A stretch of DNA of 64,000 nucleotides from positions 930,001-994,000 of the forward strand of contig NW_025767083.1 in the NCBI RefSeq assembly GCF_003918875.1, written 5' to 3'. The DNA comes from Haliotis rubra (taxonomy: Eukaryota). Below are positions 47,301 to 51,364 of this stretch, piece after piece (positions within the stretch are counted from its first letter, which is position 1; each line of letters opens with the position of its first letter). The notes beneath the pieces were generated by a model. The model was not told where the DNA came from and made no database searches. It saw only the letters and a program-made list of their open reading frames with translations. Position numbers and translations under genes: made by a program.

Positions 47301-50300
47301 AATATTTTGTCAGCATAAAATATACACACAAGGGTTGACTGATTATAACTCCGGGGTCCATATGTCTACAGTGGTTTGAAATTTTCACAACAAATGCTGC
47401 TGCAATGTGAATGTAAAAGTAATGGCTTTAATGTAGAACGAGATATCCAAGGTCATGGCCTGATCAACGTTACTACGACTAGGGCCGCAAAACATGAATA
47501 ATGTTGAATAACCTTGTAGATGTTCGACTAACTCTCCCCAACAAGAGGTATTTCTTCATCTTTCTAATTGTAAACGTTCCAGCAGATACACCCTTTGTTA
47601 TACACCCTACACTTTACAGACTTTCCAGTACAATTCACCTTCTTCTTTTATGTCTCAGCATAAAACGAATCTCGCTCATCAGTAACAAAAATGAGGTGAG
47701 ATGAAATTTCCTATTTGTATTAGTGTCATGTGCATTTCCTTATGATTCTAGAAATGTGTGTGGTCGCTATTATTTTTGATTGGGTTTTCAAAGTGAGATT
47801 TCTCCAATCGTTTATCCGCCACTCGCAATTATGTATGTTTCACATTTGGTCATGTCATAAAAACTGCTACTGACAACTACATTCTTTCGCCTGTCGACTT
47901 TGCTATTTTCACCTCTTTCCTTGAATGCCATATACCCAGCAGCTAGGGAGGCAGCAATCTCTCCAGCAACATCTGATCCAGGTTTGCTTGGTGTGAGTTT
48001 GTAGGCGGGTCTGGCCATCTTCATGTCCTCAGCACGGCCCCAGAAGTGGTGGTCGTCATTGCCTTCTCCAACCTTGAGGAAATCAGAAGCTATGTTTGAA
48101 AACATGAATGGATACGGTGATTAACAATTCCAAATTCTGTTCCAAACGTCTCGATTATTTGCGCAACACATACCATTAGGCATAAAAGGCAAAATCGTAA
48201 CATTACTTTCTTTCTACAAGGAATATGATCCTGACCATAGATGTAGGGAACTAACATTTACTCAAATCATTTCCTGGAAAACATACCAAAACGACATCTC
48301 ACCTGTGCATACAGCGTCTGACTAGCTGGAATCCAACACTTCAAGTAGTAGTCCAAGGGCCACTTGATCATGTCAAAGAATTTGTCTGTTTGTTTCGTTG
48401 TGGCATAGGCATCTTTCCACTGTAAGTAGCCCCACAGCAGGAGGGTGGAGGAGCTGGACATGGGCAAGCTGAACTTGACGTGATCACCAGCTGGAGAGAA
48501 AGTCAGTAGTTCATAGCAAAGATAGGCAACGGGGTTCCCGTGTTAAAGAACAATGATACGTTTGGGAATATGCGGTTTTAATTATGTATTATAGTACACA
48601 TTTGGTCATTATACTCAGATTTTCATCACAATGCTTTTTAGCACAAGAGCATAGCACTTTGGTTGAAACGTTCGCTCGTCACTCGAGGCCAAGATCAATG
48701 GACCAGTACAATATATGAATGTAAACTTACTTCTGGTGTCAACTTTTCCACTCACATTTAGCTATGCTTGTCGTAATTGGGACTTAGACAATGATTTATT
48801 GACAATTTGAAACGGTGTGCATCAATACGCTGAATTAACATCATCACTGTAAATTGTAAATGGGGTATACACAACAATATTTTGTGGGTGGTAACGAATT
48901 ATCTGTTACATCTGACCATCGTGTTTAAGATTGCTCTGTGACATGGATGTTGCATATTTCACAATTTTAACAATAATGTACACATTTTTTCCCAATGGCA
49001 ATTTCGAAAGTGTTTATGGGTTCTAAATATAACCAAATAGTGTCCAGGGAACCGACTACTGACCATCATACCAGCCTCCGGTCAGATCCTCCCCATTATC
49101 TCCCTTGTCTCCCAGGGCGGAGTCACCTCGCCACTTGATGGGGTTGTTGGCCGGAAGTTTACCGGATCTCTGAGCGTCATAGAACAGGATGGACTTGCCA
49201 AGAGCCTCGCCATAGTTGTATCTGGCTGTACCGCCTCCTGCAACACGGAATATACCGTACACATTACTTGTGCATCTCCATATCATTTCGGATATAGGTT
49301 ATTCTTTAATCTTCCATCGTCACAATTTGATATGCAGAGTTGCATCCCTTTGACGAACCAGCGGCTTATCCTCGACGAGCCTGTGTTTCAAGAACTGTCT
49401 GGCGGCCAAATGAATACGTTTGTCAGACTCGCTGAGAAACCGAAGCAGGTCTCTGGATTATCTGTCATCCAGGATGTTTGGGCTACTGCCATACAGCTGG
49501 GATCGTTAAGTACCACCTTCAACAACAAAGTTAATTAACAAACATGGTAACATACTCGACCAATCCCACTGGTGGATATGTGTACAGCTATATAGTACTG
49601 TTGCAACCATAAACAGAACGCACCTGTGTGCAATCACAAACAACAGAACGCACCTGTGTGCAATCACAAACAACAAAACGCACCTGTGTGCAATCACAAA
49701 CAACAAAACGCAGCTGTGTGCAAACACAAACAACAGAACTGTGTGCAAACAAACAACAACAGAACGCACCTGTGTGCAATCACAAACAACAGAACGCACC
49801 TGTGTGCAATCACAAACAACAAACGCACCTGTGTGCAATCACAAACAACAGAACGCACCTGTGTGCAATCACAAACAACAGAACGCACCTGTGTGCAATC
49901 ACAAACAACAAAACGCACCTGTGTGCAATCACAAACAACAGAACGCACCTGTGTGCAATCATCAAACAACAAAACGCACCTGTGTGCAATCACAAACAAC
50001 AGAACGCACCTGTGTGCAATCACAAACAACAAAACGCACCTGTGTGCAATCACAAACAACAAAACGCACCTGTGTGCAATCACAAACAACAGAACGCACC
50101 TGTGTGCAATCACAAACAACAAAACGCACCTGTGTGCAATCACAAACAACAAAACGCACCTGTGTGCAATCACAAACAACAGAACGCACCTGTGTGCAAT
50201 GCACCTGTGTGCAATCACAAACAACAGAACGCACCTGTGTGCAATCACAAACAACAAAACGCACCTGTGTGCAAACAACAGAACGCACCTGTGTGCAATC

Positions 50301-51364
50301 ACAAACAACAGAACGCACCTGTGTGCAATCACAAACAACAAAACGCACCTGTGTGCAATCACAAACAACAGAACGCACCTGTGTGCAATCACAAACAACA
50401 GAACGCACCTGTGTGCAATCACAAACTACAGAACGCACCTGTGTGAACCACCTTCGGAGGTGCCTGAGTAGCGCCAGCCACATTGCCCTCTATAGTGATG
50501 GTTGTTTTAGGGTTGATGTCACCAGTGGTGTGGCCGACAATGTCCAGACACAGTGTGTCACCAGCGTGTTCATCTGCGTTCCACTGCTTGTTCGTCAGGA
50601 CGAATTCCTTTCCGCCACTCAACTTCTGGACATCGGCTGTACCGACCTGTCAACAAGGTTTCAGTATAGAGTTTTACGCGACCGACGTTACTGAACAGAC
50701 TGGGCTCCTACACTGTAATGGTTACAGGTGCATGTTGAGTAGTAATACCACGGAGCAATCAGAAACAAGCCCTCGATTTTGGTGAATCTTGAGTTCGACC
50801 CGACTACCAGCGGGCCCGAGCACGGATTGGGACCATGATCATATCGCTCGTCCGATTACCCTTACCTTCTTAGCACAAGATGGGCAAGCAAATTTTACAT
50901 AAATTTAGATCATTACTCGTTCTGGTTGTGTAAAAATAGGTAAGAAATATTGAAAAAACATTTGCTGCAGTAAGTTGGATCGGAACAGTGATAGAATCTG
51001 TCATGAATATGGAATAACATAATATATCTAGATTTCTATTTATTTAAAGAAAAAACATTGCCTCTGTTTTATTAACATCCACTCCATACACTTGAAGTTT
51101 GAAGCCTGAAGAGACATATTTGCTACAAGCAGGGTCCATATGTATGACCCATTCAATCGATGACTATTAAAGATCAACACACTATATCCTCACTTCTACG
51201 GTGTCCACAGCTTCAGAGAACTTCAAGTGAGCCTTCCAGCTGTGAAGCTCAGTGGTGATGGGGACGCAGGCCTTCGCCTGGAACCCGCCGTTCCAATGGT
51301 TACCGATGGTGACGTCCGCCGCCGAGGCCGCAGCCGCTAGAGCCGCCAATACCAACACCAGCAT
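44389..51364 (-). CDS. GH9 endoglucanase gene D: signal + CBM2-like + short linker + GH9, 578 aa
   Basis: 11 coding exons: 51364-51194, 50646-50439, 49237-49064, 48490-48303, 48072-47913, 47289-47178, 46927-46777, 46209-46065, 45420-45249, 44842-44652, 44453-44389 (1737 nt, in frame). Catalytic motifs intact. Confidence 0.95.
46441..46600. mobile_element. Penelope-like inverted fragment (same family as 54861-55467)
   Basis: Shares ttatggayagacaacttct, acgtttcggtgtagat, tgcttgataacggtgttag and the ccagcttctaaatg tail. Confidence 0.65.
49614..50445 (-). repeat. 30-bp minisatellite (~27 units) built from the splice donor of gene D exon 3
   Basis: Minus-strand unit GTGCGTTCTGTTGTTTGTGATTGCACACAG; the first unit begins at the true donor CACACAG|GTGCGT (50439/50438). 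Confidence 0.95.

Follow-up and report, generated by a model that had tools for sequence, protein, structure and literature searches.

Intron 2 of a digestive cellulase gene in the blacklip abalone Haliotis rubra begins with a long run of copies of its own 5' splice site. The locus raises the question of which of these donors would be used in splicing, and whether the array that carries them acts on the output of the gene or simply leaves with the intron. The original prediction described the array from sequence and proposed regulatory roles for it. We have analysed the array and its host gene together with their counterparts on a second H. rubra contig, in paralogous genes of the same cluster and in other abalone species. 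The window refers throughout to the whole 64-kb stretch of H. rubra DNA that was analysed, which is the end of contig QXJH01000402.1, and a slash marks an exon-intron boundary or a copy of one.

The GH9 cellulase cluster and gene D

The window contains a GH9 cellulase cluster of five genes, with A to D on the minus strand and E on the plus strand (Table 1). The array lies in gene D, the exon boundaries of which were set by homolog alignments (HSPs), GT-AG and phase. The exon ORFs of gene D match Pfam Glyco_hydro_9, with profile positions 1-444 covered exon by exon, and the CBM exons 1 and 2 match mollusc CBM2-bearing enzymes. The gene carries DAGD and HHR motifs as well as NEVA near the C-terminus, which we take to be the GH9 catalytic motifs.

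Gene D is an intact gene subject to strong purifying selection, and the constraint extends to its CBM exons. All 11 exons were open and all introns were GT-AG. An ortholog was located in H. asinina upstream of the gene E ortholog, the same arrangement as in the window, and its best window matches were to gene D; each of the 11 gene D exons was present there without gaps or stops. Comparison of gene D with this ortholog gave a dN/dS of 0.064 (exon-by-exon sum, CBM exons included) at a dS of approximately 0.31. The synonymous and nonsynonymous differences numbered 11 and 2, respectively, in exon 1, and 17 and 8 in exon 2.

Table 1. Positions in the window of the cluster genes, of the relevant parts of gene D and of the two junction arrays.
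Feature	Position	Strand	Description
Locus L003, 1-18373	45628-64000		100% identity to the window
Gene A		minus	exons 1-2 only inside the window
Gene B	8234-18144	minus	
Gene C	28057-34538	minus	without CBM
Gene D	44389-51364	minus	CBM2-like module + GH9 cellulase; model of 11 coding exons, 574 aa
Gene D exon 1	51194-51364	minus	signal peptide and first half of CBM; donor GAA/GTGAGG
Gene D exon 2	50439-50646	minus	second half of CBM and linker; end ...GGTTCACACAG, phase 1
Authentic exon 2 5' splice site	50433-50441	minus	CAG/GTGCGT (C50441 A G / G50438 T G C G T50433)
In-frame TGA of first unit	50419-50421	minus	same place in every full unit
Junction-spanning minisatellite	49598-50445	minus	approximately 28 units of 30 nt, including degenerate last unit 49598-49623
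Gene D intron 2	50438-49238	minus	1201 nt
Unique remainder of intron 2	49238-49597	minus	ends TTCCGTGTTGCAG
Gene D exon 3	49064-49237	minus	start of GH9 domain; preceded by TTGCAG; join to exon 2 gives codon G/GA
Gene E	55658-61900	plus	
Gene E junction array	60649-61010		starts inside exon 8 at ...AGATATGCAT/GTAGGT

Structure of the array

Tandem Repeats Finder placed the array at 49612-50445 with a period of 30, 27.6 copies and 88% matches. Each unit consists of 7 nt of exon (CACACAG, the end of exon 2) and 23 nt of intron 2, and in the first unit these 7 nt are the actual end of gene D exon 2, followed by the working donor. The common unit runs from GTGCGTTCTG to TTGCACACAG, in agreement with the earlier description of a 30-nt unit that starts GTGCGT and ends in a U-rich tract and CACACAG. 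Two main unit variants, with either C or T at +8, give rise to a partial 90-nt higher-order pattern.

The exact sequence CAGGTGCGT (CAG/GTGCGT) was found 26 times on the minus strand, always within the array, and no CAG/GTGCGT was found outside the array on either strand of the 64-kb window. The deviant units were one CAG/GTGCAT, one in which the donor was deleted (CAG/TTCTG) and one in which G+1 was changed (CAG/CTGCGT). The original prediction had put the number of amplified donors at about 27. As the 26 identical donors represent one amplification and not independent events, any claim that they exceed chance is limited to the position of the array at the junction.

At its first junction the array coincides with the boundary between exon 2 and intron 2 of gene D, and the unit junctions are indeed identical, as had been claimed, to the real donor of the CBM/linker exon. 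This donor matches the consensus CAG/GTRAGT at eight of nine positions, and none of the ten donors of gene D is stronger (the others match at 6 to 8 positions), so that the downstream copies, hereafter the decoys, are not weak. Read-through of the first donor gives G-GT GCG TTC TGT AGT TTG TGA, which encodes GAFCSL followed by a stop. As each full unit carries this TGA, use of any decoy donor would result in a premature stop and a 132-aa ORF. This predicted ORF is CBM-only and is made up of 57 + 69 + 6 aa, which agrees with the length that had been given for the product of downstream donor use.

The junctions had also been said to resemble acceptors. On sequence alone a U/G-rich tract of approximately 57% pyrimidine precedes the CAG/GT junction, a composition comparable to that of the real acceptors of gene D, which makes the description a fair one at this level. 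Since the final 7 nt of every unit are those of exon 2, in-register removal of units, whether in a single step or stepwise, would yield the canonical exon 2-exon 3 join.

Variation of the array between contigs

The array is real and variable. In three DNA runs contigs covered the introns evenly and extended into the array from both sides, and in these contigs k-mers were approximately 14 times as deep in the array bin as in the flanks. The array is also present on a second H. rubra contig, QXJH01001960.1 (locus L001), which shows 97.8% identity over 7.6 kb; this second contig is either the other haplotype (haplotig) or a recent duplicate, and the difference in array length (809 nt versus 841 nt in the window) and in the order of the unit variants is to be read accordingly. 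Unit 2 on QXJH01001960.1 is a perfect CAG/GTGAGT decoy, and other units read GTGCAT, GTACGT, GTGGGT, GAGCGT and CTGCGT. Over exons 1-8, gene D on the two H. rubra contigs differed by 3 synonymous and 0 nonsynonymous changes.

It could be argued that mis-assembled long noisy reads gave rise to the array or to its length. Small assembly errors do occur, as QXJH01001960.1 has a 1-nt deletion in exon 5 which resembles a homopolymer error. However, the two contigs have arrays of similar length with distinct interiors, contigs from the DNA runs enter both edges and show the raised k-mer depth in the array given above, and a two-copy form is found at the same site in H. asinina, which leaves an artefact with next to no probability.

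Origin of the array

In paralogs A and B exon 2 ends CCACATACAG/GTCAGTG, and this homologous junction is without an array. The orthologous intron 2 was compared in H. asinina alone, with H. rufescens and H. cracherodii flanks ending in exon 1 or intron 1. H. asinina has exactly two junction copies, 30 nt apart, which read CACACAG/GTGAGA and then CACACAG/GTGAGT and are followed by a (TAC)30 microsatellite. The second of these copies and the H. rubra unit have the tail TGTGATTGCACACAG in common. Given this shared tail, the two-copy duplication of the junction is most likely older than the split between H. rubra and H. asinina (dS about 0.31), and growth to approximately 27 units would then have taken place on the side of H. 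rubra. Alternatively, the array could have contracted in H. asinina.

The array probably arose as follows. A 30-bp segment consisting of the last 7 nt of exon 2 and the first 23 nt of intron 2 would have been duplicated in tandem in the ancestor of gene D, a stage with two copies that is seen in H. asinina. Slippage or unequal exchange would presumably have expanded it to the present unit number in the lineage of H. rubra, where the array appears to be still changing between haplotypes.

A second junction array in gene E

A second junction array was present in the window, in gene E, and this array was found in H. rubra, H. rufescens, H. cracherodii and H. asinina. The gene E protein models (8 of 8) read LRYAS/NMA, which is the first-donor product. 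In the H. rufescens and H. cracherodii arrays most of the proximal decoys have GA or GG in place of the donor GT.

Comparison with known repeats at splice junctions

In intron 7 of human F7, a 37-bp VNTR with its first element spanning the exon 7 boundary presents 5-9 identical sites; although functional, the 4-8 pseudo-sites remain silent, and splicing always takes the most upstream site (PMC1557585). In F7 minigenes only perfect CAG/GTGAGT decoys compete, and these take 70-90% of splicing (PMC1557585). Intron 2 of IFI6 (6-16) has 25 pseudo-sites and uses the two most proximal ones as well, and intron 13 of CBS has 15-20 units with two pseudo-sites used, while in LMNB2 and PDGFA the authentic site alone is used (PMC1557585). 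A 31-bp VNTR of CBS is tied to reduced CBS activity in the title of a work cited there (PMC1557585). Exon-intron-spanning tandem repeats known as 'mirages' have been described in the amphioxus Adh3, globin, TnC and PGBD5 genes, where their length is unstable and splicing is undisturbed (PMC3087553, PMC3902484).

The gene D array is like that of F7 in that the first monomer lies over the boundary, identical pseudo-donors follow the authentic one and the copy number is polymorphic (Borensztajn et al. 2006, PMC1557585). The two differ in size and donor strength, as F7 has 5-9 units and a weak donor (TGG/GTGGGT, consensus value 74) whereas gene D has approximately 27 units and the strong CAG/GTGCGT. 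They also differ in that every decoy of gene D yields a stop, and in that exclusive use of the first site was established by experiment in F7 and is inferred in gene D. Many reiterated donors, in a copy number comparable to that of gene D, are likewise found in IFI6 and CBS, but a decoy-spliced product of gene D would be truncated. The amphioxus repeats resemble the array in being boundary-spanning, length-unstable and from an invertebrate, the amphioxus genome being minisatellite-rich. In contrast, gene D is that of a mollusc, its unit includes just 7 nt of exon compared with the larger exon parts in several of the 150-160 bp amphioxus units, and a two-copy precursor is visible in a sister species of H. 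rubra.

The gene D units are arranged head to tail, their length falls within the range of approximately 10-160 bp, and the splice-site sequence is unchanged in the downstream monomers. The first monomer holds the working boundary, and length and sequence are unstable between contigs and species. At the level of sequence the array thus has every feature of a 'mirage' or F7-IVS7-type minisatellite, and on this basis would be placed in an already known repeat type.

Donor choice in gene D

We consider it likely that the array is a tolerated junction-spanning minisatellite which is removed within intron 2 from the first donor. From precedent and from the gene models we infer that the spliceosome would pick the most upstream copy, which adjoins the defined exon, and that the approximately 25 identical copies would be silent or nearly so. 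Lying downstream of the first donor, the array would be removed as part of intron 2, and would be a tolerated, fast-evolving by-product rather than a regulatory device. If the decoys are silent, the spliceosome takes the donor beside a defined exon despite 25 equally good copies, and the observations made on F7 and amphioxus are extended to a mollusc.

In the public annotation a 593-aa product is given on both H. rubra contigs, and on the contig of the window CBM_2 and GH9 matches fall within this one protein. Since each unit carries an in-frame stop, the joining of CBM_2 and GH9 in a single annotated product means that no array unit is retained in it, which is evidence at the level of the gene model and not of reads. 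The annotated product is 19 aa longer than our 574-aa exon model. A scan for the source of this excess found no convincing upstream in-frame ATG exon and no single alternative donor or acceptor that would add 57 nt. A length of 593 aa could be reached with an exon 10 donor at +18 nt and a repeat-like terminal exon at 44163, but this solution skips the terminal exon that is conserved in H. asinina.

Some observations count against a neutral reading of the array. The decoys are strong (8/9) and identical to the authentic site, and a perfect CAG/GTGAGT is present both in unit 2 of QXJH01001960.1 and as the second copy in H. asinina.

Masking of the decoys by RNA structure was also considered and rejected, as folding was no better than that of shuffled sequences (z of -0.2 to +1.3 for authentic and decoy contexts). 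The authentic donor was itself predicted to be paired, and nothing in the folding separated the first donor from its copies.

Possible leakage from the decoys

A different outcome would be expected if the decoys were leaky. A fraction of transcripts would then be spliced from the first few downstream donors, and would be degraded or would give a secreted 132-aa CBM-only protein, with the length or sequence of the array modulating the amount of enzyme. All decoys are identical to the strong authentic site and in frame with a TGA. Decoys are silent in most published cases, but perfect-consensus decoys compete in F7 minigenes and one such decoy is present in unit 2 of QXJH01001960.1. In H. rufescens and H. 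cracherodii, the proximal gene E decoys that lack GT would be consistent with selection against decoys that work. Against leakage, gene D is strongly constrained and is annotated as a full-length CBM+GH9 product, and a word search in a length band up to 131 aa found no short protein matching the exon 2 read-through ORF. Protein evidence for the joining of exons 2 and 3 was also sought. A HMMER search with exon 2 returned distant CBM2 relatives only, and word searches that started from the Aplysia enzyme yielded abalone proteins of the gene E type and none of gene D.

We regard leakage as unlikely but as a live rival to exclusive use of the first donor, particularly for the contig whose unit 2 is the perfect GTGAGT decoy. 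If the decoys do leak, the locus would restrain a digestive cellulase to a degree set by copy number. The indirect evidence leans against a strong effect of the array on gene D output. The suggestion in the original prediction that array length tunes the balance between full enzyme and free CBM or decay has a precedent in CBS and is unsupported for gene D.

A broader proposal can be made in which abalone junctions are hit by minisatellite birth above chance through a junction-directed process. The gene D array, with its 26 strong and identical binding sites for U1, would in that case be an allele-dependent valve, with unit number or a perfect decoy setting the loss to stop transcripts or to free 132-aa CBM. 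We hold this to be very unlikely.

As H. asinina has two copies and H. rubra approximately 27, and as one contig carries a perfect decoy, the locus provides a natural allelic series for 5' splice-site choice. Whether the decoys are silent or leaky, it also carries a caution for annotators, as abalone introns often start with copies of their own donor.

Possible recursive splicing

Recursive splice sites, or ratchet points, occur in long Drosophila and vertebrate introns and consist of juxtaposed halves of the form YnCAG/GTxxGT. By their sequence the gene D junctions may similarly juxtapose acceptor-like and donor-like halves, and their AG/GT could in principle serve as ratchet points for stepwise removal in which CACACAG/GTGCGT is regenerated. 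The acceptor-like left halves, with their pyrimidine content of about 57% followed by CAG, are no worse than the real acceptors of gene D. The unit ends equal the 7 nt of exon 2, and in-register removal would leave a canonical mRNA. Known recursive splice sites serve very long introns, and conservation between species is a second mark by which they are recognised. The intron of gene D, in contrast, is short (1201 nt), and at 1.2 kb recursive removal would be unnecessary. The sites follow one another in tandem every 30 nt, so that adjacent sites are closer than the size of an intron, and they are not conserved, as H. asinina has 2 copies and paralogs A and B have none. Recursive splicing of the array is in our view barely plausible.

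The interval missing from gene C

The array had been placed within an interval deleted from gene C, and this was confirmed by alignment of the two genes. Gene C 34538-34458 aligns to gene D 51404-51318 and gene C 34461-34265 aligns to gene D 49228-49028, with gene D 49229-51317 absent from gene C. The joint 49227>51321 was also present in contigs from the DNA runs.

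Perfect-consensus decoys and a second junction-spanning array

On the second H. rubra contig (L001, QXJH01001960.1) a decoy donor with the perfect consensus CAG|GTGAGT was found 30 nt 3' of the authentic gene D donor, and the same decoy was present at the same distance in H. asinina (L005). In human F7 minigenes most of the splicing was taken by perfect decoys of the CAG|GTGAGT type (PMC1557585). Two other repeats were observed in intron 2 of the H. asinina gene D ortholog, a perfect (TAC)30 microsatellite directly after the second junction copy and a 9-bp array of ten units close to the acceptor.

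Gene D is not the only gene in the window with a junction-spanning minisatellite, as another begins within exon 8 of gene E (...GCAT|GTAGGT) and was found in four Haliotis species, with a copy number which differs among them. Most of the proximal gene E decoys of H. rufescens and H. cracherodii (L002 and L004) contained GA or GG in place of the donor GT, and all gene E protein models used the first donor.

Coordinates of genes, decoys and repeats
Feature	Location	Strand
Annotated gene D	window 44389-53887	-
Perfect decoy, array unit 2, second H. rubra contig	L001 4342-4372	-
Perfect decoy, H. asinina	L005 5860-5866	-
Gene E exon 8 array, H. rubra	window 60649-61010	+
Gene E array, other loci	L001 16190-16600; L002 25597-26400; L004 19940-21100; L005 15608-15700	
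(TAC)30, intron 2 of H. asinina gene D ortholog	L005 5758-5847	
9 bp x10, same intron	L005 5436-5524	
Intergenic minisatellite, 29 bp x42	window 23091-24420	
Intergenic minisatellite, 25 bp x42	window 25811-26859	
Intergenic minisatellite, 48 bp x21	window 38296-39337	
Intergenic minisatellite, 38 bp x10	window 54931-55333	
Gene A intron 2 ORF	window 1-1400	-

Gene D coding model and CBM2-only proteins

The gene D annotation starts some 2.5 kb before the ATG at 51364, and its product of 593 aa is 19 aa longer than the 574 aa encoded by the 11-exon model, which is conserved in H. asinina. In exon 5, one A of an AAA run is missing from the second H. rubra contig (window 47998 vs L001 ~1990); a homopolymer assembly error is more likely here than a true frameshift of this gene copy. 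For both contigs, including the one with this deletion, the annotation gives a 593-aa product.

Public collections contained short mollusc proteins with only a CBM2 domain (P0004, P0007 and P0010; 166, 237 and 170 aa, respectively). Judged by eye, their tails C-terminal to the CBM/linker region resembled intron read-through. These are models or transcripts with a truncation similar to the one that the hypothetical 132-aa gene D product would have.

Other elements

Minisatellites were very abundant across the region, four of them large and intergenic. A long ORF in intron 2 of gene A extended beyond the window edge and, by eye, looked like the endonuclease/reverse transcriptase of a non-LTR retrotransposon.
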